From Takakia lepidozioides (taxonomy: Eukaryota > Plantae > Bryophyta), in the NCBI GenBank assembly GCA_030704615.1, contig CM060733.1:20894001-20958000 (forward strand): a DNA stretch of 64,000 bases, read 5' to 3'. Shown here piece by piece: positions 15,971 through 40,834 of the stretch. The first letter of the stretch is position 1, and every line of letters starts with the position of its first letter. The notes under the pieces are model-generated. The model did no database searches. It saw nothing but the letters and a program-made list of their open reading frames with translations, and was not told the origin of the DNA. A program made the translations under genes and the position numbers.

Positions 15971-18900
15971 TCACTTTTTGCAGTATTTCATCTGGGGTTG
16001 TTTCTCTGGTCTTAAGCAGTTACGCTTCTTCACATGCACTAAAAATCCGGTCACTGTTTCAGCCTCACAACAATCGTTTTCCTGGGCTCTTTGAAGAGAA
16101 GATTTGGCAACAGACAATGCAGGAGATTTGCAGGAAGCTTTGCCCTCCAAGAGTCGAAGCAGGGTTCTAAGGATTGCACTTAAGCTCTCAAACAATCCTC
16201 ACTAGCAAAATGCAGAGAGCTCCTTACATCATTCCAAACTCACACGCAGATACTGCTGCTGCCTTGAATTCCACAGATGCTACCTTAACATTCCCTCTTG
16301 CAAAGGCAAGGCGAGCTTTGAATAACTTGTAATACACCCATCCAATCTCTGTATACCATGCAGTTACACCCGGTCAGAATTTCGTCTCTCTGAAATAGGG
16401 CTCAAACATCTGGCAAATGCATATATGGAGCATGTCATACAACCATGGTCAACATAAGAGGAAAAAGGCAAATCAAAACCAGAAACCCCATGGCAACTAA
16501 AAGGGAATGTTTGCTTAAACTCTTTATCAGTAACCTGGCTTATGATTAGCTTTGATTACTGCATAAACAACGAATTCAAAAAAGTCAAGGCTTACTATTG
16601 CCACAACCGATCAGGCTACCATGTTTTAAGTTGTTAGCAGTGTGCACCGTGACATATGCTGAGATGAAACAAAAGGCAACATCAAATTCAGGGAAGAAAT
16701 GAATCCCTTCTTCAGTGGGAGCCTCAAACCTATTCGGGCTGATACCAATTTCAGTCGATCAAGGAGAAGTTCAACAACTCGTTCCCTCTCTCTATTTGGT
16801 GGATCCAACAGCGTCTGGGTCCCCACAGACAGCAGAAAGAGCTCAATGGCCGAAGCTAAAGCCATTGGAAACACTGGAGTCAGGGGAGTAATGTTGATCA
16901 GCTGTGGTAGCAACATGGTTGCTTCTTGAATAACCTTCTCCCTCAACTGTATATGCAGTGAAGCTTCCCATCCCACGGCTCTCACCTGACCATTCGTACA
17001 AAGTGTCTGCTAAGACTATACATCCATTTGTTTGTCAATCTGTCTCCTCTTTTACTGATCTAATGCAGTTTCTTTTTGTTGGTGTGAAAGCAGTGTGGGA
17101 AGGATAAGGGAAAAACCCCAGAATTGTGCCTTCATGTACACACTCCATACACACAAAAATGAACTGTTAAACGGCAGGTGTAAAAAACAGATTTCGTAGG
17201 GCAGTTCCACTGCAGCTTTCTGTCTCTTTTTGTGCTTTGGATGCCCAACAATCTAGAAGGTATGCAAGCTTTATGAGCTTCTTTGAGATTTTTTGCTGCT
17301 GCTAAGGCAGCCTGAGATTTTGTTGAACACTTGCTTTTAAAGTAGCATTTTTTCAGCCTTCACCCACTTTGTGTGTCGGATTTCTTACGGTGCGCCATTG
17401 TTTGATTTTAGGGATGGTGCATATTTACTGGTCTACTACCATTATTGCTTTTCTCTCCAAAATTCCTTTTTGAAGTAGCATCAAACATGAATCAGATCCA
17501 GTGCCGTCCTTCATCCAAACCTTATCTCAACTGTCCAAATTTGACACAATAGAAAGGTGGTTCAGTAAAATGGTTTCTCTAAGGATAAACAACAAAGGAA
17601 GAATTTGAGAGACCGGTGACATTGTGTGTGACAAGCAAGAGCTCAATACTGACCTGCAAAGCCATTGAAGGGATTGAACAATGACTGGTGTCGAGTTGAG
17701 CTAAGTTATCTACAGCCTCCTGGTAGTGTCCCATACCGCTCAAGCTCGCTATCATCAAGAAAAGAGCCCAAACTCGCAGCTGTGGGTGATCTTTGCGAGC
17801 TGCAAGTAGTCTGAAGCCCTCTACGTGGCAAGCTTCAAAGTCACCCTGGTCAACCAAGCAATGGCATCAAAGGACCAAATAGTGTGAAATATTAAAACAA
17901 GGGCTCTCCACACATGCCTACTAATCACCAATTGTCTGATGCCCTAAACCTTTAGCACCCACTGGGTGAAAACGTGGTATTATCATCTAAGATTGCTGTA
18001 AGCTGCACACCTGATACAAATGGCCAATGGCCTTCAAGCAGTGGCATAGATCCATCTCTTTTTGCCCATGGCTGGCCTCATACACCCTTATTGCCTGTGC
18101 TGCATGAGATGCAGCCTTTGACCACTGGCCTGAACAAATATCATACAAACAACTGTTAGCGTGTCTATTTTTCTGTCACTATACCTTCCCCAGCCTTCCA
18201 GAGTCCTCGTGTAGAAGTGGGGCATGAGACTCCAGAGTGCAAGAGAACTATTGAGTATATATCTGTCCTCCAGACAATAGGTCTACATCCTTGTTGGCAT
18301 ACAAGTCAAGTTTATCCACAATGGATTATTGCATCATTGGGGATGATGTACGTTATGACCAAACTTTATCTTAACTTTTCCAAAGAAACCAATTTACCTG
18401 TGGATGTCATAAAGTTTCTCTTCACTCCAGTACCTTTAAAGTGCCATTTCATTTCATTTCATTTCTTTATTTGATGTTTCTTTTTTTCTTGTAATTCTGC
18501 TTGGTGCCTTTGGCCCCTTGGAGGTTATGAAGTTTGTGCATTCCCTTGTTACTTTGTCTTTCTCACAATCTGGTGCATGGACAACGGCCCTGGCTACGGG
18601 AAGCAAAGTGTAATAAGCACATCTATGTCTGCCTGCAGGCCTGGTTCTCCACCTCTGTAATTATAGCCCTCCTTAACTATGCCTCACCCTGCTTCCTGTC
18701 CTCTTCACCCACAGCTTGCCAATAGATTACAGACACAGTACCGTGCAATAAGTAGACAGATGCAAGGTTGTAATGGATATCCCCAGCTTGCACTGGAATG
18801 TGTAGAGACTCCACTTGGTGTGCCAAAAGCTGCAGACAAACTCTCATGTGCTGCTTGGCCCTCCATGTATTGTCTGCCACTAAGGCCAGCAAAGAATGTG

Positions 18901-21900
18901 CCCTTGCGACTTCTAAAAAAAGTTCCTTGCCTGCCTTTTCAGCGACAGAGAGACAACGCCGGCCTATAACCCTTGCCACTTGAAGGTCCTCCTGTGTATT
19001 CTTTGCACCACATGATAATCAGCCAAAGTAATTTGATCACATGAAATCTGGTTTGCGAATGGCACAAACAATAAGTAGGGTTCATAAGGCTAAAAAAATC
19101 TGAGAAACCTCCAGATATTATCTCAACGTAGAGGATGTGCATTGACTTGCCTTGTTGTTTATGGGGAATGAGACCTTCTGACAGATGGTGAGCTACATCT
19201 AGACAGATATTCAGCTCAAAGAAGTATTACTGGTTGGTGGTCCAAAAGCAATTCATTGATGCTGGGAGGCCAAAGAAAGTGATAAGAGGTGTCCTAAGTC
19301 CTGGAAGGAGATTCATTCTCGAGAGTGAAACTAGTCAAAGGTAAGAGATGCACCCGTTGAGTTTCCTAGAGTCACAGGCTGCTCCAGACTCCACCTGATC
19401 TATTCCCTTTTTTTCCGGTTACTTGCGTTGTGTCTTTGTTTCCCATGAAGAAAATGAAAAAATAGCTGAAACAACCTTTAGTTTGCAAAGTGGGCCATGA
19501 TCACCATTTACGGCTCCTGGCATCTTCAGAGAATGCAAAAGAGAAACCAATAATAGATGTTGCCTGTGACAGTACAAAGAACATGGATGTATAGCTTCCT
19601 TATAATTGTACATGGGCACCCTTGAAGAGACCAGAGAAGTGGTCTATCAAGCAAACTATGAGACTCCAGCACCTATGAGTTCTGGTTATATGTATTCTGT
19701 TGGAAAACCACTAGCATGTGGTCGGGCTAGGGATTGAACCTAGGACCTCCCCCATTCCGGTGGGGTGCTCTACCACTGAGCTACCCGTCCAGTTCTATTC
19801 TCAGAGTGTCGTGCAAGGGCTATAGCCTTGACACCTCCAACACTCCCCCTCAAGGCATAGTCCTTATAGCTGATGCCCACCCATTCTGACCACCGCCCCA
19901 ACCTTGGCTCTGATACCAAGTTGGAAAACCACTAGCATGTGGTCGGGCTAGGGATTGAACCTAGGACCTCCCCCATTCCGGTGGGGTGCTCTACCACTGA
20001 GCTACCCGTCCAGTTCTATTCTCAGAGTGTCATGTAAGGGCTATAGCCTTGACACCTCCGACATATTCTGTATCCCATGATCGTGGTTTGGATTCTGTGT
20101 GTCTTCGATTGTTGTCACACAAAGAAGACTCGTTTTACACAAGAGAGGGTTTCCTTCCCCTCTGGTTCCCCCTTGGACATAATCTTCAATTTCTTCTTAC
20201 AGTCAGGGTGGCAGCTTTGAGGACCAAAATACCTACCTCTATGAGGTACTTCTTGGTTGGGCTTTGTTCGATGATTACTGAAGACATAGTTTTTCTTGTT
20301 GTTCTACTTGTCCCATGAGCCCTTGGGGTCCCCCTGTCGACATTATAATATTTCAGAAAATGACGAGACAAGGGAAGTGAGAAAGACCATTTACCTTGAG
20401 GATTGCAAGGCTTGCAAGCTGGATCAATGCTTCACATCGGAAGGCCTTCTCTGGTCCATGTTCACCACATACCGAAACATAACCTTTCCTCCAAAGCATG
20501 ATTACTTGATGTACAGATTCCCGCAGAAAGAGCCCTAGCCCACAATTGCTGCACCAAAAACCGCTGTACCACCTAGGCAAGGGATCGGCGGGAAGGCTTT
20601 CCCCAATAATTTTAAGTGCCAATATTGTGTGCTGCCAGCCACTCTCAATGTTCCCAATCGCAACATAAGCTCTAGCCAAGTATTGGTGCCAGGTGGCAAC
20701 TCGCATGGGGTTGATGTGATCTCGGACAATGGTTCCAAGAGAAATAGCATTTTGGTAGTAATGGATAGCAGTCTCATACTGCCCAAACTCGAGCAGGGAA
20801 GTTGAAGCCTGAAACAAAGATCAAACTGCATTTTCTTAAAAGACCCCAAATTAAGAGCAAATGCCTTCATAACTACACATCTATTTCCATTGCGTCACGC
20901 CACAGTAGGTTTCAAGCCATTGGACAAAAGTGAAATTTTGAAATACAATGTGAGGCTGGAATGTCTGCATATAATGTGCCACAAAAACTTTCAGGCCATT
21001 GCCCAAAAGTCTTTGGAGTTTAGAAGTTAATAGTGTAGCCTTAGTTCTCCGTGATCAACTGACCAATTTGAAAAGACGAGATTTTTTGTTTGTGACACTA
21101 TAGAGATGAAAGATGGAATCAATTGTGGTATGTGTTGATCCAAATTACTTTCTCCAATAGTATTAGAGATATACTTGAGCTGGAAACATGGCATCTGTTA
21201 GGCTGGAAAGAGTGTGTCAAATTAGTACTCCAGCTAACAGAGCTTTGTCCCTCAATGTAAGACATGTTCTGTTGACAATCAGATTAACATTCAGATCCTT
21301 GTTTGTTCACGAGTTTCTGATTCTTTCAATTTTGAGTTTGCTCAGTTTGGTAACTGCACTCCAAATCTATGATGGTGAGAGAAGTGAAGACTCTCTGTCT
21401 TGTGTTATTCAAGATTGATCATGCCCCAGACCTTCACCAAAAACTAGAGGAAAGAGGGAAGTAACGCACAGCTTTCTCCCAGTGGTCAATGGCGATAGCA
21501 GCAAGACCTATCTCTATTTCCTCCACATCCTTGCAAGCCATAGTACAGTGGTGGGCAACACTCACACAGCGCATGCCACTAGTCCCTTTACTGAGCAGCT
21601 CTTTGGCCAGGTCAGCATGAATGCTGCGGCGCTGCTTGAAAGGTAGCACCTCATATGCCACGTCGCGGATCACCTGCTATACATACGTTACTCAGTCATC
21701 TCAGAAACTTCACTAACCACCAAGCAGATTTGGTAAAGGAGAAACAGCGATGATAGTACACAGATGAGGGAGAAAGCTGATCACCAGAAATTACGATTCC
21801 GCTAGAGCTTCTATTCATAGTTTTGTAGTGCAAACAGGGCTATATTGTGGGGCTACCTAGGTTTCATCACTTTAAAGCCTCATCTCACATCACTTTAAAA

Positions 21901-24900
21901 ACAACAATATGGTGCAATTCAATGGTGAGAATTGAAGGTAAGTACCAAGTTTGAGAAGGAATAGAACCCTTCTGGGTCAGTGGGCCAATGTGTAAGGAAA
22001 TTAAGTTTGTCCAGATTCTGCAGTCCAGCCTGTAGCTGCTGCTTGCTCATGCGTGTAGTATTATCCCTGTATATTCAACATGGGTTCCATCAATGTACTT
22101 TCCCCATCAAATCTTTGGGCTTCTACCCGTGTCCATTGGGCCTTATGGGCGTTGCACAGACATAATGAGATGTTTTTTCCTTCTATTCTATGCACTACAA
22201 GCCCTTGCCAAAAGGAAGGAGGAAGCCACCATAGATGCAATTGCGAGTCAAAACAGAATGGGCGTCAAAATGCACACCTGTGAAGCTGTTGGTTAACAAC
22301 AACCAACAGCGGGTCAACTGAAAATTTAAGGCCCATAACACTTGCCACCTGGAGCACACAGTCTCAGATTGAAGCTGCAGCATAATGACAAGGTAGTTTT
22401 AACAATTGCCTTTTGCTGTGAAAATAACCGTCTAGCTATGAATCACCAGCTTGGTTGAATTCCAAACATTCAGTTGCAAATCTGTTAACAGCAGTTCCAG
22501 AAATTGGGATTGAGATACCTCACAGCCTAGCTCGACTCCCCTGTTGCCAGTGGATGGGTTTCATGTTCAAGGAAACTCACCTTAAGAATCAGTGCTTGGG
22601 CCGGTTCCAAAAGGTCAATACGAGATGTGACTAGAGCATCCATGGAATGTGAAAAGCTGAACTTGTCGAGATCGAAAATGCAGTTTGATGATGCTTCGCA
22701 TGCCTCCAGCATACTTTTCGAGTTGATGTTCATGTCAATTAAAGCACTTGCCATTTGCTCAGCAAATAGAGGATGCCCCTGCAAACACAGAAACAAAAGA
22801 GAATGGTTCCAATGAAAGAGCAACCTGTGACTTTTTTGTATTGCAAGTTGAAGGTCTTTCACCTGACTAAACCATACAAAGAATTCCATTTTATGCTGGT
22901 CTGGCAGGATCGCACATCCACCTTGCAACCAGCAAGAATGTAATTGGTGCCCTACATAAAGTAAAGCCATGGAGGGCACCCAAACATTGTAAGCAACAAA
23001 ATTTGGTCCATTTAACCAAACCCTCAGATTAGATGGTTAACATGACTATCACATTGTTTGGTCACTAATCCCTGCCAGCTAGCTTCTTTGTCAGATACAA
23101 ACTGACAGCATTCAACATCCGTAAGGAAGAGATGTAAGAGTGAAACTCAAAGGCAGTGGCTTTTCATACTTGCTGGCTTTGGTTTTCACAAATATGTTTC
23201 AATGTAATGTTGAGTTAGGTGACACCATTTCATGAATTTGAGATACGCCTTCTGCAATGCTTGTTGAACAATACTTCTCAAAGATTACCCAGCCTTGCAA
23301 ATCCCAAATGCTCTTTCAAAATGAAAATCTGAAAGTGTAATGCAGAGAGCTGCCACGCTGTAGCTCATTGACACAACAGGAAGTTGCCAGCATCCATGTG
23401 CACAATGTAGGTGATATGTTAAGCATGGTCATGGTTTACTTTTGTAGGTCATATATCGAGGAAAGTCCTCTACAACCTTGTATCAGAACTGTTACCAAGT
23501 TGCACTCTTCATTTGTGGCATACGTACATGTGTCCTAACGAAGATGGCCTCAAGTATCTTGTCAGGAATTTCTGTTGAAGCTTGTAACGAGAACCTGATC
23601 TTTTGACGAACCAGCTCTTGTGTGGCAATTTCACTCAGCTCCCTGTTTTAAGCAAGTGGAAGTTAGGTGAGAATACTGTTCCTCTCTAGAAAAGATCAGT
23701 TGAAACTCAACAGGTTTTCGTTGATGAAATTATAATCTAAAAAGTCTCTGGAACTATCAATCACAAGCTCAGCAGACAGAGAAATAGCAGCCAGAGAGTC
23801 AACTAACTGCTGCCTGATGAGGGAAGTGTGGCCAGGCTCACCCGCTCCAATGGAAGTAAGAGCCAAACTAAGATGAGTAGAAACTCTAGTCTCTACACAC
23901 CAGCACCAACCAAATGTCCTAGGAACTCAGCTCAATCGAGATCCCAACATGCAAGAAATTCAAGCTGCCATGATCCAGATCAAAACCCGGCACCAGCAGA
24001 TCACAATCTGATTCAATCCTACCAATGGGACATCTTTCCTTATCTCTCCAAATTCAAGCTGCCATGATCCAGATCAAAACCCGGCACCAGCAGACCACAG
24101 TCTGATTCATCCTACCAATGGACATCTTTCCTTATCTCTCCATCTCTGCTCACTCTTGCAAAGGACTTGCCTGAGATGAATCATCAGAGTGCTATCAGTC
24201 TGAATAAGGGCAGTGTACTCCTTGGGTGCATGGCACCCAAAGGGCCGGCATGCAGCCACTACCAGAATGCCACGTTCATGCTTGTTGGTGACTCCCTTCA
24301 GAACACCCCATGATGGCTTGTCGAGAAGCTGCCATGTGTTTTGTCAAGGACAATTGACGAGAGTTCACTTCAATGGATACCTGCTTATACAAACATTGCT
24401 TCTCCTTGGACTTACCTGCAAGTGTAACTAGGGAATGGAGAAAAGGATACATGAGCATCCTCCACAAAAATTATGCATGGCTTTGAAACAAGTGATAGTA
24501 AAAGCTCCTGAATAAGCCGCCCTATCCGTTGGACCCGAACATCCGCCGAAGCCCTCTTGCTATCAGACACCTTTTTGGTCTCTTCCTTTTGTTTCCAAGA
24601 CTCGGTTAAGTTTCTTCTGGAATCACCTTGTCTGTCTTTGGAAGAAAAATCCTCTGTTGAATGCGGCCTCTCGCCGTGGTTATCTAGTGAAACAGATCCT
24701 ATTCTTTCTTCCAATTCTTGAACTGCAGGCAGCTACAGATTTACATCAGTACCTGCCAATCAGACTGGAGCTCTCACTTGAATTTCCCCATTTGCCTGCT
24801 GAATCATCCACAATGGTAGGAACCGTGACAGGTCCCCTGCAGATATCTATTCTAGAATGTTCAATTGGATAAGGTAACGCAAAAAGGAAGGTAAGTCCAT

Positions 24901-27900
24901 CCACTGGAAACAGAGAGACAACAGCTTGTTTGTGGTTGCAAATGACTCACCAATCGGTTCGGTGGTGGAACCCAGCTGGACCGCCAGCTCTGCTTCATTT
25001 CTGGCAGACGGATCAGGTGCAGATGTCATAGATGAAGCTTTGGAAGATTTCATGATCTCAGAGACTTTGAGGGGACTCTTCCTCTGGGGGCTGATGGAGG
25101 AAATCAACGTTGCTCCTTGGGCAGCAAGCTGCAAAAAACTGGAAATGTGCCGAGGAACTGCTTCCTATAGAACAGACAAATCAATTTTGGGTACACATCA
25201 ATCCTTTCTGCCTACTGAACATACGGCTCTCTCTTTGATGAAAGACAGAATGTTCTAAAGTTTGTCTTTCTGTTTCCTTCTTTCATCCACCCCTGAAAAT
25301 CTCAAGGCTGAGCCTAAAGCCCTGGCCCTGGTGGGGTTTAACTTTTGGGCTGCTCAGATAGATGCTTGTGAGAAGGGCTTTCTAGAGGATATCTGGAAAT
25401 CCTGCACTAATTGTTTATATTGGGGTAAGTCACACTACTGGAGTGAGCTCCTCACAAAGGTAGTGCCTATTCCCTATGTTTCCGTGAAAGATTACATAGG
25501 ATAGGGATCCCTCCTGACATTATACGGGCCATTTTATCCATGTACAAGACTGTCATCGGCATGGTCAAGGTTGCAGGAGAGTTCTTAGCAGAGACAGCAA
25601 CATTGGGGTCAAACAAGGCTGCCCTCTCTCACTACCCTATTTGGCATCTACATATATGCTCTGGAAGGATACATTGTAGGGCAAGACTGCCTGCATATGC
25701 CTTCAGGCCAAATGCAAACAAATACACCTGCACCACCCTCCCACCAAAAAGTGGCTCTTCGACACGGTTGTCACTCTTGCCACCACTTATGGCTGTGAGT
25801 TCTGGGGAGCTGGTGTCCCAGTTTCCTGGTGGGAAACAAATCTAGGACCGCTGCAATCGCCTTTCCTCCAAGGGATGCTTGGAGCTAGAGGGACAACACC
25901 ATCACAATACTATGTGCAGAATTTGCATGTGACCCACTCCAAACCGAGGCCATCTTCCAGTTTACAATCCTTCTTACAAGGTTACAAGCCCTTCCACCCA
26001 GAGGGTTCACAGCCAGGGCCCTCACAACATCTATCAGGCTCAAAACAGCTGGCTTCAAACACTCTTGGTATGCTTGGGTGTCCAACTTTTTAAGCCCAAT
26101 GGACTCTCAATTGCTTCCCTACTGCCGCAAAATAAGGAGGGGGTGGATACTGCGTCCAAACAGGACCGCAATAGATGCATCAGAAGAGAACTTAGGGAAC
26201 TGCACATCAGGCGGACATGGAAACCAGCCACTCTAACAACAAAACTGCACTTCTATCAGGAGACATTCTTGGTTCTCCATGATGACCCCTCTCTCTTACT
26301 TGTTTCTTGAAACTGAAGAACACTTCTACTTTTATTACCTCTATATTACGAGATCCGTGGGAGATTCCACTGTCTATTCTGCGGAACTTAACTGAAGTCT
26401 TCCACTATGAGGATCAGAAATGCCTGGCAGCTTGCCTGCACGAGGCCTTGACCCTTAGACAATCCCTTGAGCAGTAGTTGCTTTTGGGCTGTTTCATTTG
26501 GCTCTGGTTTTGTTTCCTCTCTCATCTTTTTTTTTTCCCATTTTGTCCCATAAGCTCTTTGAGCTTTCCGCAGATGTTATAAAGTACCATTTCATTTCAT
26601 TTCATTTCTTCCTCTTGTCCCATAAGCTCTTTGAGCTTCCCACAGATGTTATGAAGTCCCATTTCATTTCTTAAGAGACTCCCAGTCTTTGGGAGAGGCT
26701 TTAGCTTCAAGCAGCTGAGGTGTCTGGCTGCTTTTTTCTCTCCTTTCTTGCTTCCTCCACCTCCTGTGGATATTTTCCTAATACTCTGTCATGCCCTGCA
26801 GGCTGATTAACAGTGGGTGCATGTAGAGTTGACAGTGGTGGTAATAACTTAATTACTCTGCTGAGTATGGACACAAAAGGGCACACTCAAGTTTGAGACA
26901 AGCTAGAGTAAGCTCCATCCCACCAGTTGGACATTTTGATTGCAATGTATGGCCATACTCACACTATTCGGATATATCCTGCAGGCCACTGACCCTAAGT
27001 CTATAGCATCCATATCATGTATAATTACGGACATATGACTGCATAATCCCCCTACAGTTCCACAATATTATGAGAACCTAATTTGTACAACCTAGAATCC
27101 TCTTTGAATGCTCTTCAACTAAGAATGTCTCAGTTGTAATCAGCAATATGTTAGGATTTTTGTGAGAAACTAAACAAGCCAAACACACCTTGTGCTCAAA
27201 ACTGTCCCTGGAACGTATCGGTGGATCGCTTTCCAATCGCTTGAAATTCTTCCCTGTGTTGACTGATGGAATTCGACTCCTCCTTGTATGACTAGGCTGC
27301 TGCACTAAACACAAGTCTACAGTATATATATTGCAAAATTTTGCAAACTGTCGCCTCCAAATACAACCATAACTGTTGGAGAGGAGCCTCCATACACGTA
27401 CTAGCTACGGTAGCCAATATTGCCTTACCATCAAGCATATGGACATGATATGGCACTATGCAACTTAAACATGTTTCAGCGACTTTGCCTAAAAAGCGAT
27501 GTAGCAGCAGTCAGGTAGACCCATAGAGATACTAAATTGTCTAGGCTTTCGTATGATGCATGTCTTATATCAGAGTGTCAGACTCCTGCCCATTAAGATA
27601 ACCCAGAACCTAAGGCACCATTTCAAAAAAGCTGGCACAAGTGGCCTTGATTACTCTCTTTCCTAGTGTACACTCCTTGTCATTAAGAATGTGGATATAC
27701 TACCCATGATAGCTTCTGTAATCAAGACAACTAGAGAGAAGCAAGAAAGAAGTTTTGGATCTTCACCTTAAACTTAATCTTTAGGATGTCCTTCAACAAA
27801 TGGGCATGTCGTATAGACGAGACGGGCAAATTCTGCAACACCAGCAGCCCTCTCTCTTCAGGGCTTGACCTTGGGTCGAAGCAGAAAAGGTCTCGTATTA

Positions 27901-30900
27901 CCCTCACCCATGGACCAAATACTAACGTGTTGTTTTGTTCAGGATCACTAGCTGTAAGGAGGACCTGTGCCCGTGCCTGCTGTTTGAGCCTACTCAGAAC
28001 TGACTGCAAAAGTTTCGATTTCCCAATTCCAGCATGCCCAATGACCATAATAGCTGTACAGGGTTTTTGCTGAGCTGGAAACCCAGAAGGCTCCAAAACT
28101 GGCAGCCCTCTACCAAGTTGCGATCCTGCCTCTGCTGCTCCACCAGAACCTTGCCCATCTCTGGGTTTGTCAATTTCTGCTGTCTCCCAAGTAACATCAA
28201 ATTCAGTTTTAACTACTCTAGTATCAACGGCAGCATTTGAGCTGGAAGAAGAGAAATGCACCAGAAATTCATCTATGTGTTGTATAAAAGTCTCGAACTC
28301 TTCCTTCCTTCCAATCATATCATCTTTCAAAACACTTTCAGGAAAGTCTTGACGCGGAGGCAAGGGCTGAGAAAGTGCAAGGGTGTTGCTGGAGATTTTC
28401 TGACTCAATGCACGATAGACATTAATGGGTCCCTTCTTCCCTTTCACCGTCATTGGTGGTAGTGCCACGTAGTCAAACAAAGTCGAGGTAGCAACATATG
28501 TTTCCATGTCAGTGAGTATCTGCAGAAGTAGCATTACAGTCAATTTGAGACGACTCATACAGGTACTTAATACTTTCAAAATTGCATCCTCTTGGACTCA
28601 CAATGCCCAGTTTTTGGACCCCCGATATTATGTCCTTTCTCGCGAAAGCTCCAAGGCAAATACTACAGTCCTGACTAGACAGAAATATGTTACTCCTTAC
28701 CTCATTCTTGGCCTTCTTCATAAGCCGAGCACTTAGGTTGATAGGGTCCCCAAACACTGTATATTCACAGCGTTTCTTGCCACCCACAAGAGTGCACAAA
28801 AGCTTGCCTGTGGTAACCCCAATGGCACTCCCCTGCCCTTTGTTCTTCAGGCTCTCTTGGATGGTCAAAGCTGTTTGAATTGCTCTCTTCGGATCATCTT
28901 CGTGCAGGTTACCAGGTAGCCCAAATGCACAGATCAACAGGTACCCTGCCACACCGTTCTGCTACGTTAGCAATGTCATGAGTGAAATTACTGGGATGAG
29001 CTGCTGTGTTGCTCCTGTAAGTGAATATCAAAGGAAAAGATTACCACTGGGAAGTGTGGGCAAAGTGCGCCAGCGCCAGGCAATGGGTTGCTTGAGCCCC
29101 TCGGAGATGCCATCCATCCAGATGTTTGGATCCAGGCAGAATGGGATACTACAGCTTTGGATGTCATTTGATGTTTTCTGAGGCCATTTCCATATTGTTT
29201 CCTATTTTCCTTTGTCCCATAAGCTGTTTGAGCTTCCCCTGGACATATCCCCTCTTTCTAGATCTTTCTTTGTTTCTACCTACACGAGGCCTTCACCCTT
29301 AGACAATCGCTAGAACATTAATTGTGGTTTCTGGATTTGTTCCTCTCTCATGTTTTCTTCCATTTTGTCCCATAAGCTCTACGAGCTTTCCGCGGACGTT
29401 ATAAAGCACCATTTCATTTCATTTCATTTCATTTGTTTGGCTCTGATTTTGTTTCCTCTCTCTTATTTTTCCATTTTGTCCCATAAGCTCTTTGAGCTTT
29501 CCGCGGACGTTATGAAGTACCATTCCATTTCATTTGTTTGCGTGTGTTCAACGTAAAGGTTCAGTTTCTTGAGGGTTGGACCTAGAGAAAAATTTGGTGG
29601 TCTCCAGCCATAGCATAAAGCAAGTATGAAAGAACTCCCAGGATGTCCAAGGGCTTCTCTAGCTGCAGATGCAGCTTTGCAGGCCTCACGGCTAAATCTA
29701 AATTCTTTGAGTGCTTGCAATCAGGGGCAAATGGGCACCTTACCCACATTCAATGGAAATGCTAGGTGCAGCTAGAGCAGCATTTTGCAAGCTTGCAACC
29801 TGTTGTGGTACTAGCAAGCCTAATTTATTTAACAGGCTCTTGGTACCACTGCTGATAGGGGCCCAAAGAAGAAACAAAAGTGTGAGACTCAAAGGGAAAA
29901 ACCACACCGTCCTCGCAAGCTACTCGTCTACTCTTTCACCCAGAGATGCAGTTACCGGCCTTTCCTTTCATCGGGCAATGAAGACCTCGTAGAGATGCTT
30001 CAAGTGAGGCAACTGGTACAAGAAGAGCCCATAAGCTCGTGACTCAACTAGTACCTGTTTCCAATGCCTCATTTCTTTAAGTTGTTTGGGTCAAGGAGAG
30101 AGCAGGGGTCCCTTTCCCATCACAGGCAGTTTCTGGAGGGCCAGAAGCTGAGCAGAAGCATGACCTGCATAAGAAGGATCATCATGGAAGGTAGAATGCT
30201 CAATGTCCTTGCTAACTCCCCAGATTCCATCCCTCTCCAGGTTCAGAGAATCTAGAATTGGAACAGATGTAACAGAGAGGTTCCTATCAACTGGACCAAA
30301 GATGAGGAGGCTACCCAGGAAGGCGCGTGCAGGCCACCATTGCTAAGTTATCAAGGATCTGGCATCCTCTTGATCACATATAAAGGGTGCTTCACCTCCT
30401 CTGCCCGGTGTTCTGGAGGTCTGGCTCTTTTTGCATCATGCCATCTATGCACTGGATCACTTAGTGGCAATCTGTAGTCTTTGGCTCTCTTTGACCACCT
30501 CATATTGCCATGCATGCCCTACAAGGTCATGGCACATGAGGGGCTTGTTTGTTGTTTGTCTTGGTATTCTTTGTTGCTGGAGGGCTCCATGAACTTTTTA
30601 AATCAAGAAAGGAAGTATGGTTTCAAAAAGGATAAAAAATGTCAAAATGTATTGAAAAATGTAATTCAGGCTAAAGACCGATGAGTTTGCTCTGACCTAC
30701 ACCATAACAAACGACAACTTAAAGGGTGAAACAAAGTTTAGCATGGCATCCAAGGGTTCACTTACCTTTCTCATCCATGCGGAACTGTGCAAGCGCCCCC
30801 TCATAGAGACGGAGTGATTGCTGCACTGCCAGCATGGCAGTCTGAACACGTTGAAGGTGCAGTGAGGAATCACCCACATATATGGACAGAGAAGGGAAGC

Positions 30901-33900
30901 CTACGAAGACGCATGTCACATATCGCACTTCAGCTCTTATCCCACTCCTCCTTGGGTTAGAAACCATTTGGCTGTGTAATACTTCTGGTAAATATCTAAC
31001 ACACACAAGCCAATAGTATCTTCAGGTCAGCCACATCATTCGCAACTTTCTTTTGGCTCAATAAGCCCTTTGAGCATCATGTGGATGCAGTAAATTTGTT
31101 CTTTTTCTGTCTCCGCCATCCTTATCAGAGTATATCATACATATTCTAGTCTCCTACGCTGGTAATGAGAAGTGATATATAAAGAAAGAAAGAAGACAGT
31201 AATATGAAATAATACTTTATAACATCTGCGGAAAGATCAAAGAGCTTATGGGACAATGAAACAAGAAAGAGAGAGGGACCCTCCACAAGGAGCCCAAAAA
31301 AAAACTGTTGTACAAGGGATTGTCTAAGAGTCAACATGCAGAAATGCCGCTAAGCATTTCTAATCCTCGCAATGGAAGACGTCTGGGAGAGATTGTGTAT
31401 GTTGGAATAGACGATGGAATCTCCCATGGATCTCATAGTAGAGAGGACTGAAAGAAGAGATGTTCTTCACTTTCGATTACCCTGTTGTGTCCAGTGCAAG
31501 TGGGCACAGGCAATCCTCACATTGCAGGTTGTCCCACCTACGAGTCTCTATCTGCAGACGGTGGGAGCCCACCCAACAGCCTTAGAAGAGAGGGAGATAG
31601 AGCTGCAGACAGGTAATTAGGCCCCAAGATTCTCATGGAGGACCAAGAATGTCTCCCAATAGAACTGCAGTTTTGTTGTAAGATTGGCTGGTTTCCATGT
31701 TCGCCTGACATGAAGTTCCAGAAGTTCTCATCTGATGCATCTGTTGTGGTCTTGCTTGGACGAAATTTCCACCCCCTCGTATTTGTGGCAGTAGGGAAGC
31801 AATAGAGAGTCCATGGTGCTCAAAAAAGTTGGAGACCTGGGCATGCGCCAGGAGGTCATGAAACCAGCGTTTTTGAGTATCATAGAGGTTGTGAGGCTTC
31901 ATCTAGGTGGTAAGGCTTGCAACCTTGTAAGAAAGATTGTAAGCCAAATGAAATGGTACTTTAACGTCCGCGGAAAGCTCAAAGAGCTTATGGGACAAAA
32001 TGGAAAAAACAAGAGACAGGAAACAAAACCAGAGCCAATATTCCGCCCCAAAGAAACTACTGCTCAAGGGATTGTCTAAGGGTCAAGGCCTCGTGCAGGT
32101 AAGCTGCCAAGCATTTCTGATCCTCATAGTGGAAGACTTCAGTGAGAGATTGAGTTCCACGGAATAGACAGTGGAATCTCCCATGGATCTCATAATATAG
32201 AGGGCAATAGAAGAAGAAGTGTTCTTCAGTTTCAATTTCCTGGTTGTGCCCGGTGCAAGCTGCGCATAGGCGGTCCTCCCGGTGCAGGTTTTCCCATTTG
32301 CCAGTCTCTATCCGTAGATTGTGGGAGCCCATCCTGAACCGCCCCAATGCCCTCAGGAGGGAAGGAGATAAAGGCGCCGAAAGGTAATAGGGCCGCAAGA
32401 TTCTATCATCACGGAGAACCAAGAATGTCTCCCGATAGAAATAGAGTTTTGTTGTGAGATTGGGTAGCTTCCAAGTTCTCCTGACAGGTAGTTCCATAAG
32501 TTCCCTTCTAATGCGTCTGTTGCGATCCTGTTGGATGTGATTTCCACCCCTTCTGGATTTTGTGGCAATAGCGAAGCAATAGAGGGTCCATTGCGAAAGA
32601 AACTTCATATGTCCCTGAGGGCCCGTCGGACAAAGTAGAACAAAACAAGGAAAACACAACCAAAGGTCCATATGCTGCCCTGAGATGAAGTGCCTCATGG
32701 AGGTTAGCTACATCTAAGAAAGTCTCCTACATCCACAGGAAGCCCAAGGACTTCTGGACGAAAGATTCAAAAGAGAGATGAACTCAGTAGACTTAGATTG
32801 ATTTTGGCTTATGACCATCAACCCGCACCCAGTTTGGATGGAGCAGGGAGAGAGGATAGTTGGGAAGGAAGGGGGGAAGAGTAGCATTGGGCCCACTACC
32901 ATTATTTAATGCTGGCTCAGTCAGGGGAAATTGGCTTCACATATGAAGTTGTTGAGGCCTTCTGAATCCTAGAATCTGATTTTTGGTTTTGAAAATCTCA
33001 TTCAAAACTTGCTTTCTTCTCTCCTACTTGCTCATGTCGTACCTTTTCAATGCAAGCACAAGCTTGGGAGCCAGTTTGCCTTCAATCTTAGTCCCGCTTT
33101 TCTGAGAAAGAGGAACGGTTACATGGCCAACCACATGACTGAGGCGAACAAAACCCTCTTTCAACACCTCACCCACACATTCCTGGTTGATATGGGCCCA
33201 TATCTCTGGAGACAAGATCACATCCCCTGCAAGTTGAACTCCATTTCAGCTTCACCTAGTAAACAATCCTGAGATGTGCTCAGGGACAGCTTTGATGCAG
33301 TCATCATCATGGGGTTGAGAAACACAAAAAGATTACTGACCGGATTTGGCATGGTCCTCACAGTGGCATAATTGATCAATTGGGTTGTGCTGGTTTTGGG
33401 CATCAGGTCCTGGAAGGAAAGGCATATCAGCCATGAAGAACTCCCAACGTGGCTGTCCAGTTGGAACTTGAACTCCCCCTCCCACACTCAGGGTGCATAC
33501 CTGCCAGACTAGCAATGTTCACAGTTTCAAAGAACATATCAAACCCCAACTGTTGCTCTGCCTCATGCACATAGACCAGGCAATACCAAAACACTCCTAA
33601 CACTAAATGAAGACAAGAACGAGATCATTTGGCCAAATCCCTGGCAAATTCAGAAAGAAAGGATGTTTAAGCTCACTCTAAAACCAGCACCAAACAAACC
33701 CCGCCCAGCGGCTGCGTCCCCTCCCTTCCACCTATCCTCCCCCAGTAAATTAAAGATCTGTCAAAGCATACAGGGACGTGCAAGTTCAATGGAAGACCAT
33801 GGTACCTCTCCCATGCCAATCATAACCTTGAGTGTGAGAGTGAAGGGGGCCTCCAGTGGGAGGGCCAAACTTGGTTCTGAGAGGCCTTGAAATGCCACCT

Positions 33901-36900
33901 TCCGCATTGGTGTTCCCTGCTGAGGAGATTGCTTCCTTGACGTGGGTTTGGCTACTTCATCAGTCCACTCCTGCCGATTCTGGTGGGTACGGAGCATACG
34001 AAGGATTGTGACCAGCTGGGACATTGTCACAGGCTTTGCCAGCAATTCATCCATGCCTGATGCAATGCAAGATTTCCTTAACTCATCATCATAGTGTGCG
34101 CACACCTGTGTAGTAGACATTCTCCATCAATGGCAATCTCTGGGTCTTACATGCACAAAGCACTGTATCCCCTAGCAACCTTTGGGGTTAGAAATGCTTT
34201 ATGATTTCTTTTGTCGTTCTGCTGTGTCACATGGACCTTTTGGACATCTCTTTCTTTCTCTCCCATAAGCATTCTAGGACATTATAAAAGATGCTGGGGT
34301 TTCTGACAGCGTCTTTCAGTTCTTTTGTAGTTCTAGTATGTCCACAGACCCTCTGAGACATCATAATTTGTGTATGACATGCCAAAAAGCTTATCACAAA
34401 TGAGGTAAAGAGAAGAGAGAAGAAACTTATTGTGTCCACAGTAGGCCCAGGGAACACCAATACAACAACAACACAGTTAGGAGCAATGAAGCAGTAGAAC
34501 CACAGAAACTTTCTTTCTCTATGACAATTCAGACAGATTGTCTTTATAACCTGGTCGATGACATAAGTTTGATAGGTAGTTTGGCAGGTTTCACTAAGTA
34601 GACCAATTCTAACCAAAGGCATGAGCAAAGCATAGTAATCACATAGCTTTCCCCCTTCAATGAAATGGTACAGATAGAGTTCATACCCCAATGATGTATG
34701 TGGGTCGCCTGCCTGAACTTGGCCACAAAACATGCACCCAGAATAGGCACCGGGTTGATAAATCAATCACAGTTCCAAGCGCATAGGTATATCTACATAT
34801 ATGTGCATGCTCTAAGGAGAAAGGAAACATCTGCTCAAGGGAAAGCAATAGCAAACAGAGGAAGACAAGAAAATCTGGCTGTTGCATTTCCCACCACCTC
34901 TTCTGAGACGACACAAACACCATAGAACAGCACTTCAACAGCAGCTTGGACGAAGCTGGAAGGGGTCTAATTGAAACCTGGACCAATGAGACCAACCATC
35001 ACTTTCCAGAGAGAGAGAGAGGAAGACTCTTGCTGAAGCAAGCATAACTTATGGTGTCACTTCACCCCAAAGGGCTACTGCCTTCCGTTCGGGAAGGTGT
35101 CCCCTTGGATCTTTCCAATGTATACAAAGATAACCTCGTGTCTCTAAATGTCTATGTGTATCTTCTTTTACTTCAAGTATTGCTCTTAATGGTCAACATT
35201 TGCGTCCTGAGTCGGTGTGCAAGATTTGGGAGACAGCATTGCAGCTGGCTTCCACTCTTTTCTTCAGGGCTTCCAGTGAAAGTTAGAAAGGGAATTCTTT
35301 CATTCTTTCACTGCAGACATAGTCCCAAGGTCAAGGGGTTAGGAAGGTTAGATCAACCTCACCCAACCCGACTGGAGACTGTCGCACTCGCCGGGTAGCC
35401 TCAAAGCCATCCATGATGGGCATGTTGACATCCATGAAAATGAGATGAAATGCTTGCTTGCAATGTGTTGCTACTGCCTCGGTTCCATTCCTGGCGAGCA
35501 CTACCTGCAACAATTAGGCTTTCCCTCGTCACCACTTTCCTCACTAATCACATTCTTTTCCATCCTTTTAGCTTCCAGTGGATGTCATAGACTATTCTCT
35601 TACTTACAGAAGGAAATTTATTTGGAGTCCTGTAGACAATAAATGCTTGGCAGCATACCCTTAGGAGGGTCTCCATCTTCATGCAATGTTTTAGTTCTAG
35701 TGCTTTTTGGTGTTAGCCTTCAATGTCTCATAAGCTATTCGGGCTGGACGATATAAAGCTCCTGTCTTGCTCTTTTTCCTTCTGCAGAGTCTATCTCCAC
35801 TGCTTCTATGAGCATCAGGAAGGTCCAGGGTGGGCTCACATAGCCTGTGGACATCACTACTTTCTGATAGATGCGTCAGACAAGGACTTATGGAACTTCA
35901 TGTCAGGCGGACATGGATATCTGGAAAGCCTCAACTACTTGTCTATACCAACCCACTGCCGAGTGAGCCCCTCACAAAGATAGTGGCTCTTCCCTTTTGT
36001 TCCACCCACACTGGGTGCGGGGTCTATGGCCACAAGGCTACAGCAAACAGCATCTTATGAATACATCTTGTGACCAATAAGCTCTTTGAGCTTCCTGTGG
36101 ACATTATAAAGCTCCTTTCCTTTCTGCTTCTCTTTCTTCCTCTTCCAGGAAAGAAGCATGGAAGGTCATAACTTGAAGACAAGACCAGTTGCAAGCATAT
36201 CTCATACTCCAGACAAATTTCTCATCTGTCTGGAAATTTCCAGGAGTTTTCTCAAGCAATTACTTCCATTAAGGCAGCCATTGAATTTTTCTTGGATGAA
36301 GGCATACAAAAAAGTCTTATAATTTCCTTGTGGTAAAGAAGCCAGTCTTACCTCACAGTTGAGTTTAGAGAGCATTTTGCTTAGCCCCACACCGTTCAGC
36401 ATGACATGGTCCACCACCATGACACGCACAAACTCAGAGGATTCTCTTTTCACCTTTACACCCTCATTCTCATTTTCGTTTGAAGTATTGCCATACCCTC
36501 CAAGCTGCACACCACAATATGAAGTAGAGAGTTACATTGGTGGTAATTGCACTGAAAGTTTTGTAGAGGTAGGCATCAACTAACTGGAAGATCTCCTGGC
36601 GTACTCTCATCTGTGTTGTCTTCATTCATTGTTGAGGTGATAACATTCATGCACCTCGATTTGGATCACTACATCAGAGTGGGGGGAAAAAATGTATCAA
36701 GCCCAGACGTGTTTGAGTAGGTGTCCACTGGTTAAGAATTATGCTGAAAACAGGGAAAGGCCTGGGAGCTCAACAGCAGTGCCCAACAACAGAAACCAAC
36801 GTGTGAGCACAAGGCACTACATTGACTAAGTAACTCATTACACAGTCCCAAGAAAAGCTCTCTATCTCTCAAACAGAATACTAATTTAAATTTTAAGATT

Positions 36901-39661
36901 TCTTGGCCCCAGTTATTAAAATGATGAATACTTTACACGGTAAAGTTGAAAAAGTGGGCATGCCTGGGGAGTGTAAGCACCAAGAGTTGACACCAAATCA
37001 AAGCCACATGCTGCAGCACGAAGGCCACAGGAGGCTTGACTCTGCGAGACAAAAAAATTCACTTTGCATTAGGAAGGTTCTCAAGAGATGCAAATAGGCC
37101 ACATTTCTTATTTCGGGGTTTTTTGGGGGTGGCGGGTAGGATTTCTTGCAAGTAGACTGTAAAAACACTACCATTTCTTGCTCATCCAATCACCAGACTT
37201 GACTTCTTTGAGACCAAGTTTGGGCTAATCTCTACACGAGGGCTAGTAGCACAGTTTGAATATTGCACTCCATATGTTGAATATGTTTAAGCTACAATTG
37301 TACTCAGTATAGATGGCCTTCGATCATCTACTCTCAAGCCTGATACAATCAGCTAGTCTCACCACATCATGGGTGCCAGCGGCAGGATGATCTACTAGAA
37401 GAATGCTGCAACAACCATTTGCACGCTAATATGTTCACAATTGCAGTTAGTGAAATAGGAAGTTTGTTTTGCGTAAATTCAGGTAAACCTCATTGCTTGC
37501 AATGTCAACAGGGAAGCAGACAATCATTGAATCTCCAGCAAACTGTGAGACAACATCCAAAAAATTTGAAGTTAGAGAAGCCCCGAAAGGCATGGAGGCA
37601 GGCAAGGAGAGAAAACAGACGTACTTATTAGACTAACTTGCAAGCAACCAATGCAGGGTTTCTCACTGGTCTTCTACAGAGAATACAAAGCAGGTGACAT
37701 CAAAAGTGTGCTTGATATGAAGAGAGGGAATAATACCTTTGTGATGTCGCCCCCATAGTCCAAGATCAGCTGGATAGCCTATACAGTGATATCATCCGAG
37801 AAATGGGTTAGCATGGGAATCAAACGCATATTGAGATCTCCTTCAGAGGTAACTGGCTATAGCCTGACTACAAAGATCTCTGCCCATGTCAAGTCTAGCG
37901 TCTGGAATTATTTCGGTGCCCTGGGTTTAGGGAGGACTAGTTCCAAAGTCCTTTCTGCAGATTTGCACTTCTGCTGTGGACAAATCAGAACCATGAACAA
38001 ATTGCAACTTCCTATAATCATGAGGATGGAGTTTGCCTGTGATGCTACAAGGAAAAGAAAGAGGAGACACAATTAGCCCCCAACATCATGGACTCTGGCT
38101 TTGAGTAGCAGCACACTAGACCCGCAAAGTTGGAATTGATCGCCGAGTAAGATTCCTGGTTGCTGATTTTTTGTGTATTTGTTCAAGGGACTCAAAGTTG
38201 GGTCATCCACTGCTGCACAGCGGTAATTGTCATGGCAATTTTCCATTCTTTCCAAACAAGCAGCAAAAGTTATAGTAGAAGCTCACAGTCAAATCGAAGG
38301 CAGACCTCGTCAAAGTAATTGTTCATACAGACAGTAAGTTCTTCCACAAGCTCTGTGCCACGCTTTGACGTCAATGCGCGCTCAGTTAATGGAGTAAATC
38401 CAGTTATGTCGGCAATAAGTACAGCTGCTGTGAAGCCATCCATTGATGGTTGTCTGGCAACTGTGTCTGCAATTCACCAACATCCAGCAGGGAAAGAGCA
38501 GTTTCAGAATTTTAAGATCCTGGCAAGTGCATGTGGCAAGTCTGTGTGTAGCAAGTCTCTGCATTGAGACAAAATCAGTGCATAAATCCAATACAGGTTA
38601 AATTGATTTATAACCAGATCTGTGATGATGTTTTGCTAGTTACAGGTTTTACTTCTGCTGATGATACTGGTGGCTATTACATCTCAGAAGCATAGAGGGA
38701 AAAATAAGTATTACCTAGCTCTTTAATTGCTTTCTGGAGCAACAAGCGAGAAAGATATGGTGTCAGAGTCATCAACTTGTCCCGGGATGTTTCCTCTCCA
38801 TCTAAGAAAGCAGGACTGGCTAGCGAGTCCTGCATTCCAATGCTCTCTGAAATAGAAATTGAAAGGTCCTCTGTGTCTTGCCAAGTTGGGAAAGCCGCAT
38901 TTTTAAGAAGAGATTACTAGAGAACACAATCTGCAGAAGCAACTCACAGATGTCTGGTTTCAAACATGGAGAAGTCAAACCAGACATTTCCATCTAAGCT
39001 GATTTCAAAAGTTTCAATGTGACAAAGGGCCTTACGTCTTTACCTTATAATCTGGATTAATCAGAAAAATACAACCCTAAACTATAATCCCAGCTGGTGA
39101 TGAACGGTTTTATACCATGAATGCAAAATCCTGCCAGCTCTCCCAGCTAGGTGTGTCTGCAAGCATGCTGCCCGGGGTTACGCTGCAGATGGAAGCCGAT
39201 TCAGCATCAAACATGGCCGGGGCTGATATCCTTCTCATTCTCATTGCATCAAAGGTAGCTGGGGTTCCAGCCGAAGGTGCAGTAAACATTAGGTTTTCGA
39301 CCTTAAGTGGCTTCGGGGGAGTCCATCTAGGACCCACTGAATTGATTTCACGATGAGGAAGCCTGTCATTGGCATCTAATCCTCTACCGCGATGATTCTG
39401 TTCTTCATTGTTACCATCTACACAAGGCAGGGGAAGTGGGCAAACTGCGTCTGAAGCCTCTCCACCTAGTTCTTCGTCTTTGTGTGCCCCTCCCTCTCGC
39501 CAACCATCTTGCCAATCAACAGCCTTCCCCCTCACCAAGTTTTGCTCGCAAACATCCGGCTGAAGAACTAACTCGACACAATTCCCTGACGGCCCAGGCA
39601 ATCTTGCAGAATCAGCCATGGTTCCATCTAGCCCCGGATCAGCCTGTACATCCTCTGACAT
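15971..39661 (-). CDS. Multi-exon soluble adenylyl cyclase (ADCY10/sAC)-like protein: C1 with inserted receiver, C2, STAND NTPase, helical/TPR-like repeats; 3' end uncertain (~15971-16230)
   Basis: Hand-spliced exons with phase-consistent junctions give, in order: 'AAVLIADITGFTPLTE...NNYFDE|AIQLILDYGGDITK|FAGDSMIVCF'; the receiver; 'LKVMIGMGE|V...RWEFFMAD...PIDQL...G|DVILSPEIW'; 'RYLPEVL...AEVRYVTCVF...FRMDEKG|YLLICAFGLPGNLHEDD...IGVTTG...RCEYTVFGDPINLSARLM|ILTD...VKGKKGPINVY'; 'MIGRKEE'; Walker A 'GHAGIGKS'; Walker B 'IIFVEDAH|LLDKPSW'; 'GHPLFAEQM'; 'SRIDLL'; 'IRDVAYEVL'; then helical repeats. Confidence 0.9.
19719..19790 (-). ncRNA. tRNA-like sequence in TRIM 3' LTR (pseudo-tRNA)
   Basis: GGACGGG TA GCTC AGTGGTA GAGC A CCCCA CCGGAA TGGGG GAGGTC CTAGG TTCAATC CCTAG CCCGACC A. 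It forms a cloverleaf with A and B boxes, one acceptor-stem mismatch and a non-canonical anticodon loop. Confidence 0.8.
19940..20011 (-). ncRNA. tRNA-like sequence in TRIM 5' LTR (identical copy)
   Basis: Same 72-nt sequence as 19719-19790. Confidence 0.8.
23957..24142. repeat. ~93-bp tandem duplication (2 copies) in a cyclase intron
   Basis: 'aattcaagctgccatgatccagatcaaaacccggcaccagcaga...gacatctttccttatctctcca' occurs twice. Confidence 0.9.
25900..26670 (+). mobile_element. 5'-truncated non-LTR retrotransposon (RTE-X/L2/CR1-like 3' end) with (ATTTC)n tail
   Basis: 'KQDRNRCIRRELRELHIRRTWKP...KLHFYQETF' matches ORF 32057-32698. It is followed by the family 3' UTR 'gtcccataagctctttgagctttccgc...taaagtacc' (twice) and ATTTC repeats. 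Confidence 0.8.
28410..30997 (-). other. Cyclase domain C2 with adenine-specifying Lys/Thr and transition-state Asn/Arg
   Basis: 'MDEKG', 'AFGLP', 'HEDD', 'IGVTTG', 'EYTVFGDPINLSARLM' and 'VKGK' in ORFs 30758-31006, 28509-28952 and 27731-28579. Confidence 0.92.
29210..29535 (+). mobile_element. Cluster of 3' ends of the same LINE family
   Basis: Three copies of the 'gtcccataagct..gagctt' motif, 'gaggccttcacccttagacaatc' and (ATTTC)n. Confidence 0.8.
31200..31945 (-). mobile_element. Older, diverged 5'-truncated copy of the same LINE family
   Basis: Reverse complement similar to 25900-26600 and 31946-32600 ('GLSIASLLPQ', 'LTLRQSL', 3' UTR motif at 31205-31255). Confidence 0.75.
31946..32600 (-). 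mobile_element. 5'-truncated LINE copy with open C-terminal ORF
   Basis: 'LGRFRMGSHNLRIETGKWENLHREDRLCAAC...IETEEHFFFYCPLY' is the C-terminal CCHC region of a non-LTR RT ORF2. It is followed by the family 3' UTR and a short ATTTC tail. Confidence 0.85.
33990..36440 (-). other. Two-component receiver (REC/CheY-like) domain encoded by 4 exons, inserted within cyclase C1
   Basis: Spliced sequence 'RVMVVDHVMLNGVGLSKMLSKLNCE|VVLARNGTEAV...FHLIFMDVNMPIMDGFEATRRVR...|RRPTYIIG|VCAHYDDELRKSCIASGMDELLAKPV'. The DxxMPxMDG and KP motifs are conserved. Confidence 0.88.
36982..38450 (-). other. Cyclase domain C1, N-terminal half (both metal-binding aspartates)
   Basis: Exon ending at 38306: 'AAVLIADITGFT' (Asp codon 38410-38408). 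Exon 37778-37737: 'AIQLILDYGGDITK'. Exon 37542-37489: 'FAGDSMIVCFPVDIASNE'. Exon ~37042-36982: 'SQASCGLRAAACGFDLVSTL'. Confidence 0.88.
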
Positions 39662-40684: not shown

Positions 40685-40834
40685 AAGTAGCCACCATGTC
40701 GAGGGTTATATGTAGGGGGAGAAAGAAGAGAGTTTTGAGAAACTCTGAGAGAGAGAGTGAGAGAGAGTCGGGGAAGGAGAAGCTGCAGTCGAGAATTGCT
40801 CTTCTTCTGCAAGATCTTCTTGCAACTGTTAGAC

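Follow-up and report, generated by a model that had tools for sequence, protein, structure and literature searches.

A receiver domain embedded in the first catalytic domain of a soluble-adenylyl-cyclase-type gene of Takakia lepidozioides

Can a two-component receiver domain (REC) reside within the catalytic domain of a nucleotide cyclase, and could a phosphorelay thereby control the enzyme? Receiver-cyclase fusions as such are common and the parts of this gene are already known, so the question concerns their arrangement. It is raised by a locus of Takakia lepidozioides in a window of 64,000 nucleotides (the whole stretch of DNA analyzed). An earlier note on this DNA proposed that a complete REC splits the first catalytic domain (C1) of a cyclase and that a His-Asp phosphorelay could gate cAMP synthesis, with the caveat that the domain may be a pseudo-receiver. 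The open reading frames in the window outline a large minus-strand gene, from ~39661 to ~15971, with the intact soluble-adenylyl-cyclase (sAC)-type order C1-C2-STAND-TPR; the end coordinate 15971 was taken from an ORF without RNA support.

Every exon between 38466 and 28701 has an open frame, fits its neighbors in phase and is flanked by AG/GT, apart from one case of AG/GC (Table 1). All C1 and REC motifs quoted in the earlier note were found on the minus strand, in order and in phase-compatible exons, and REC is encoded by four in-frame exons located in the alpha3-beta4 loop of C1. The window was compared exon by exon, with the protein of Mesostigma viride as a stand-in for a joined model. 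Exon 3 shares 83% identity with Mesostigma and 87–91% with plant loci. Equivalents of microexon 9, of 26 nt and 20 nt, are found in plant contig L001 and Sphagnum, and the fusion of the REC end and a C1 strand in one frame of exon 10 is also present in L001 and in loci L004-L012.

Table 1. Features of the cyclase gene in the window, listed in the direction of transcription.
Feature	Position	Strand	Basis
Exon 1, probable first coding exon, low-complexity N-terminus	39116..39661	-	ORF; phase fits exon 2; predicted
Exon 2, N-terminal helix ahead of C1	38715..38829	-	RNA piece 38715-38830, joint 38466/38715; homologous exon in Sphagnum
Exon 3, C1 beta1-alpha2, first metal-binding Asp (codon 38408-38410)	38306..38466	-	RNA joints
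Exon 4, C1, GGDITK; Lys matching sAC Lys95 (37737-37739)	37737..37778	-	RNA joints
Exon 5, C1, FAGDS, second metal-binding Asp (codon 37531-37533)	37489..37542	-	RNA joints
Exon 6, C1 helix alpha3, GC donor at end	36964..37041	-	Joint 36504/36964 (CT..GC), both runs
Exon 7, linker 1, then REC beta1-alpha1 (from 36429); acidic pocket Asp-His (codons 36406-36411)	36352..36504	-	RNA; HMM positions 4-29
Exon 8, REC beta2 to alpha3, Asp at phospho-acceptor position (codon 35430-35432)	35363..35504	-	RNA; Pfam PF00072
Exon 9, 26-nt microexon, start of REC beta4	34687..34712	-	Both joints in both runs
Exon 10, REC beta4 end (Cys 34100-34102) to alpha5, with Lys after beta5 (codon 34034-34036); linker 2; resumed C1 beta4 (from 33838)	33806..34105	-	Single-exon ORF; RNA
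Exon 11, C1 beta4-beta5-alpha4; Cys at sAC Arg176 position (33366-33368)	33341..33500	-	RNA
Exon 12, C1 end (DVILSP)	33043..33226	-	RNA
Exon 13, C2 first half; Gln (30785-30787) at sAC Lys334 position	30766..30995	-	Alignment to human sAC via Mesostigma, beyond the RNA-mapped stretch
Exon 14, C2 second half; Thr 28758-28760, Asn 28737-28739, Arg 28725-28727	28701..28945	-	Human sAC; Pfam Guanylate_cyc
Exon 15, C2 end and STAND Walker A (GHAGIGKS)	27767..28519	-	AAA_16 E 1.4e-5, below cut-off; homologous exons
Remaining exons, STAND (Walker B near 24450) and helical/TPR-like tail	15971..27300, approximate	-	Open, conserved exons compared with L001, L007 and Mesostigma

The window holds several other features, of which the ORFs and genes were recognized by eye. 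An intronless ORF of 1214 codons resembling phosphoglucan water dikinase (40757-44401, plus strand) lies head to head with the cyclase gene. Between these divergent neighbors, just upstream of the probable start codon, is a tandem duplication of ~340 bp with 94–97% identity (39684-40329). The plus strand also carries an intronless SF3B14-like ORF (46775-47155) and a PLS/DYW-type PPR gene with its frame split among several ORFs (49375-51900), and the minus strand carries two tandem paralogues with a heavy-metal-associated-like CCxKC motif (9747-10553 and 12668-13261).

Two public runs from two studies (X1 and X2), taken as RNA by guess and with joints that do show splicing, account for 17% and 13% of the sequence words in 32950-38900, approximately the exon share. 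Contigs of both runs map onto the exons and two intronic repeats, with spliced joints. A single 1057-nt contig in X1 runs from exon 6 (36964 side, C1 helix alpha3) through the four REC exons to 33043, and X2 covers every joint from 37489/37041 to 33340/33225, including that between exons 5 and 6. The REC exons are thus joined to C1 exons on both sides in the assembled transcripts, as the earlier note had asked to be confirmed. No REC-skipping joint is listed among the contig joints of these runs, which are assembled contigs rather than long reads or single molecules and drop rare isoforms. Plain exon skipping cannot remove REC, because exon 10 reads from the REC end into the following C1 strand without a change of frame. 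The intronic repeats (35940-36120 and 35020-35090) show very deep contig coverage with many loose ends, and stretches resembling them occur in other introns, near 29350, 31150-31340 and 31900-32700.

The transcripts uphold the position of REC and revise the boundary before it: exon 6 ends at 36964 instead of 36994 and is 30 nt longer than first drawn. The GT donor at 36994 is unused, and the RNA joint 36504/36964 uses a GC donor. Because exon 6 gains ten codons (VSTLGAYTPQ), helix alpha3 is complete ahead of the insert. The GC donor is kept in the land-plant loci L001, L004 and L007-L012; the GC-AG intron that it forms marks the 5' boundary of the insert and lies at 36964 in the window, 2533 in L001, 5205 in L007 and 7177 in L012. 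This intron occurs in all land-plant copies and, together with the 20–26 nt microexon, could be the reason that gene predictors break up the gene. The insert opens with a near-repeat, LGAY (36964-36990) and LGGY (36490-36504), which is also present in Mesostigma and is possibly a trace of the insertion event.

Exon 8 matches Pfam Response_reg above the curated cut-off (E 1.3e-10), and its best solved relatives are the receivers of hybrid kinases, Ssk1 and AHK5. Exons 7, 8 and 10 map in order to positions 4-29, 31-72 and 86-119 of the 121 positions of the receiver HMM, with a weak match for exon 7 (i-E 0.009). These matches and the model of the Mesostigma orthologue indicate a complete (beta/alpha)5 CheY-like fold. 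The phospho-acceptor Asp at the end of beta3 and the Lys (KP) after beta5 are present. The acidic pair after beta1, which provides the Mg-ligand Asp, is intact in Mesostigma and L001 and reads Asp-His in Takakia and Asp-Gly in Sphagnum. The Thr/Ser at the end of beta4 is Thr in Mesostigma and Cys in all land-plant copies. The five signature positions therefore read DD/D/T/K in Mesostigma, whose receiver is canonical, DD/D/C/K in L001, DH/D/C/K in the window and DG/D/C/K in Sphagnum.

Among the natural receivers fetched, a set biased by being picked for likeness to Mesostigma, the Asp13-equivalent is Asp in 104/104 and the Thr87-equivalent is Thr or Ser in 104/104. With His and Cys at these positions, the caveat of a pseudo-receiver is borne out for Takakia, where phosphorelay gating is doubtful because the Mg-binding Asp is replaced by His and the Thr by Cys. 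The loss of the Mg ligand in two ways, to His in Takakia and to Gly in Sphagnum, points to a pseudo-receiver or a weak acceptor. The canonical motifs of Mesostigma and the comparison with the 104 receivers make the ancestral REC look like a true phospho-acceptor, and on these residues phosphorelay gating was likely ancestral. Compared with Sphagnum, dN/dS is 0.21 for REC (67% identity), 0.51 for the linkers (31%) and 0.14 for the catalytic core (79%); the value for REC indicates that the domain is maintained by purifying selection. No Pfam match to a histidine kinase (HisKA/HATPase) domain was found in the Mesostigma orthologue, and since the chain has no kinase domain, the phosphoryl donor would be an HPt protein. 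Neither the suggested tie to cytokinin, ethylene or osmosensing nor the role proposed for the STAND switch as a second input found evidence for or against it.

To examine whether the C1 halves reassemble around REC, residues 88-805 of the Mesostigma protein were modeled with AlphaFold, using an alignment of 72 cyclase and three receiver rows; receiver rows were limited to three because alignments with many put C1 onto REC. The model has a mean pLDDT of 83 and a pTM of 0.74 (pLDDT 34 for the single-sequence prediction of this fragment). Its core superposes on human sAC over residues 9-468, with a Z of 41 and 426 aligned residues at 2.5 A, and in the model the C1 halves do reassemble around REC. 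The receiver folds independently, matches those of GacS and Sln1 (Z 21, 1.0–1.7 A), and is tethered by two low-confidence linkers (model residues 141-170 and 293-347). The insertion is structurally feasible by this model, which represents the Mesostigma protein, is biased toward reassembly by an alignment built from unsplit homologues, and does not show a docking site for REC.

The tandem C1-C2 core is homologous to human sAC (ADCY10), with an E value of 2.5e-9 for C2 exon 14 and of 0.09, weak alone, for the first C1 exon. Both metal-binding Asp of C1, the Thr, Asn and Arg of C2, and the KGK motif are all intact, and the metal-binding Asp of exon 5 is invariant in 72/72 homologues. A STAND NTPase with Walker A and Walker B and a helical/TPR tail follow C2. 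The position of human sAC Lys334 is occupied by Gln across the whole green clade and the amoebozoan relatives, and by Gln or Arg in 21/72 homologues. The gene thus carries neither the ATP-specific signature (Lys at the Lys334 position with Asp/Thr at that of Thr405) nor the GTP-specific one (Glu and Cys, respectively) and has Gln and Thr instead, which makes the name adenylyl cyclase less secure and leaves that of cyclase unaffected. With the adenine-selecting Lys replaced by Gln throughout the green clade, cAMP, the product assumed in the earlier note, is not supported; as a matter of judgment, we would give cAMP about one half, cGMP about one third, and a mixed product or none the rest. Arg176 of human sAC is a bicarbonate-site residue. 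Its counterpart is Arg in L001 and most Sphagnum loci and Ser in Mesostigma, whereas the window and two contigs of Sphagnum (L004 and L005, versus L006-L012) have Cys.

A search with the C2 exon retrieved 150 proteins, of which one, P0016, matched exons 6, 7, 8, 10, 11 and 12 in order. P0016 is Mesostigma viride Mv16533; in its longest form (P0152, 2034 aa) a Pfam REC match at 263-372 lies between C1 motifs and is followed by cyclase, AAA_16 and TPR matches. Plant contig L001 (17 kb, GC 34%) contains the whole gene, with introns, microexon and GC donor as in the window. An exon 10 search added copies L004-L012, in a cluster including Sphagnum balticum CAM6020474.1. Sphagnum loci are the closest relatives found for the Takakia gene (C2 exon 85–88% identical), and the land-plant copies (Takakia, Sphagnum and L001) share introns. 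The annotation of Sphagnum balticum breaks the gene into separate models (396, 207 and 1190 aa, and possibly one of 172 aa) and leaves the REC region in the gap between two of these, although the exons checked (3-8 and 10-14) are intact. The search for the same architecture thus succeeded: Mesostigma, Sphagnum and L001 all carry REC inside C1. Contigs L002, L003, L093 and L094 are too short to reach the REC region. The C2 exon of L002, L003 and L094, from another plant, has the motif GNCINL, and L002 and L094 also have CENT for CEYT.

The alpha3-beta4 stretch measures ~212 aa in Takakia and 234 in Mesostigma, compared with 13–27 residues (median 20) in 69 compact homologues. Based on the phylogeny of the single C2 exon (81 columns), Mesostigma, land plants and chlorophytes form a green clade (100/100) apart from bacteria and amoebozoans, within which land plants (96/95) and chlorophytes (96/89) are each recovered. 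The chlorophyte relatives examined have long low-complexity loops of 150–800 residues at the insert site and no receiver. An in-frame receiver was absent from all 80 of the best bacterial loci, and a scan of prokaryote genomes with exon 3 was blank, so a prokaryotic source of the insert was not found. A homologue search with the C1-REC part of Mesostigma returned no other full-length or 160–500 aa protein so built, which says little on absence because the Sphagnum gene, being annotated in pieces, was missed too; we claim no absence for Marchantia, Physcomitrium, Klebsormidium, Chara or vascular plants. On these comparisons, the simplest history would be a single insertion into a tolerant loop on the streptophyte stem; gain in the green ancestor followed by decay in chlorophytes is a possible alternative. 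The unrelated sAC-STAND protein P0125 has a receiver at its C-terminus (residues 1931-2048) and not in C1, which suggests that receivers joined this class more than once.

Like ADCY10 and the AC-STAND class, the gene combines tandem C1-C2, a STAND NTPase and a helical/TPR tail, with the metal Asp pair, Thr, Asn and Arg conserved and a core that superposes well in the Mesostigma model. It differs from ADCY10 in ~190 extra residues with REC in the C1 alpha3-beta4 loop, in Gln for Lys334, and in Takakia also in Cys for Arg176. The amoebozoan Pyxidicula relative P0046 has Gln at the Lys334 position, as in the plant gene, but Ala where the plant gene keeps Thr, so specificity of the SgcA type cannot simply be transferred to the plant gene. 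We know of no REC insert in Dictyostelium SgcA. By the title of Roelofs 2001 (cited in PMC5632652), this sGC is a sAC homologue with guanylyl cyclase activity. CAPE, a class III cyclase of bryophytes and charophytes (PMC5159850, PMC11032487), belongs to another subclass with a PDE-membrane-single AC architecture and neither REC nor STAND. Its hallmarks, an N-terminal PDE and a single C-terminal AC, are lacking here: the Mesostigma orthologue has no PDE, and C1-C2 is in tandem with STAND. Receivers and a class III cyclase also share one chain in Dictyostelium ACR (AcrA), where two-component input has been proposed, and in cyanobacterial CyaC, where it has been shown. In both, the receivers lie outside a single cyclase domain and accompany a histidine-kinase domain, whereas here REC interrupts C1 in a tandem sAC that has STAND and no kinase domain. 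Prokaryotic fusions of Response_reg and Guanylate_cyc in the ESM Atlas include proteins of Nitrososphaerota (340–395 aa), with room for one cyclase domain only, and a Chloroflexota cluster (811 aa) with a tandem core and a receiver, a possible precedent should its REC lie inside C1.

We therefore consider the following account, which we regard as about equally likely to hold or to fail. The gene would be a vertically inherited sAC/STAND cyclase of green plants that acquired a hybrid-kinase-type receiver by a single insertion, no later than the streptophyte ancestor. This receiver would have become a tethered allosteric module that was phospho-switched ancestrally and probably largely is not in Takakia. 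C1 would fold around the insert and pair with C2, leaving REC on variable linkers of ~30 and ~55 residues to dock on and off the catalytic core and act on the C1-C2 interface. The most plausible docking site would be close to the C1 alpha2/alpha3-beta4 groove, which in membrane cyclases is the site of G-alpha action. With an HPt protein as the phosphoryl donor, Asp phosphorylation would switch this docking in the ancestor and in Mesostigma. In Takakia and Sphagnum, fold and surface would still be under selection, but because the Mg-binding pocket is eroded, REC would most likely regulate with little or no phosphorylation, as a pseudo-receiver or weak acceptor. The invariance of the phospho-Asp and Lys in all four lineages counts against the pseudo-receiver reading and fits continued phosphorylation.

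That invariance also favors a version in which an HPt phosphorylates the Asp and switches the cyclase in Takakia too, His and Cys only tuning rates, for example toward a longer-lived phospho-state. CheY with Thr87Cys is reportedly still phosphorylated by its kinase and slowly dephosphorylated, L001 combines both acidic residues with the Cys, REC is under purifying selection, and HPts with the canonical His are present in algae and bryophytes (PMC10338860). We nevertheless consider full gating in Takakia less likely than not, given that the direct Mg ligand was lost in two ways, which suggests relaxed selection on metal binding, and that either change occurs in 0/104 natural receivers. It is less probable still that REC is a passenger for catalysis in a tolerant loop, serving as a phosphate sink or as an HPt-binding or localization module without control of the cyclase. 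The size range of the chlorophyte loops would allow this, as would the long linkers, disordered in the model, and the receiver of Dictyostelium ACR, whose aspartates are largely dispensable and whose mutants show only modest effects (PMC3009899); retention of both the domain and its internal position from Mesostigma to land plants and a REC dN/dS close to the core value argue against it.

The two remaining explanations deny either the enzyme or the gene structure. A protein that is no longer an active cyclase and serves as a nucleotide-binding STAND receptor or scaffold would fit Gln at the Lys334 position and Cys at that of Arg176 in Takakia, but the metal Asp pair, the Thr, Asn and Arg, and KGK are all retained, Gln or Arg replaces Lys334 in many homologues, and the core is strongly constrained; we consider this very improbable. 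That the REC exons are skipped or belong to a nested gene, as assembled contigs that drop rare isoforms could conceal, has a negligible chance, since one contig spans C1-REC-C1, simple skipping would break C1 at exon 10, and the Mesostigma protein model is contiguous. A more general proposal has rather less than an even chance: streptophytes may since their origin have possessed a cyclase as a direct output of the His-Asp phosphorelay, from HPt through the embedded receiver to cAMP or cGMP synthesis, which would survive in some bryophytes and other plants and would have been missed because predictors split the gene.

In the literature, most subscription papers being out of reach, we found neither a receiver placed within the catalytic domain of a cyclase nor a sAC-STAND cyclase of land plants described. 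The same design in Sphagnum and Mesostigma suggests an old, apparently undescribed link between two signaling systems. The first functional class III cyclase reported from land plants was CAPE, and debate continues over where plant cAMP and cGMP come from (PMC5159850, PMC11032487, PMC5632652). The Takakia gene, with an intact catalytic set, expressed and also found in Sphagnum, is a second, sAC-type candidate in land plants. With the canonical receiver of Mesostigma, one change in L001 and two in Takakia and Sphagnum, nature supplies a series in which the step from a phospho-switch to a pseudo-receiver can be tested directly. The known outputs of the plant phosphorelay are response regulators, and the embedded receiver would give it an enzymatic output. 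If this is true, plant two-component signaling would have, besides its type-A and type-B regulators, a branch that works through a second messenger.
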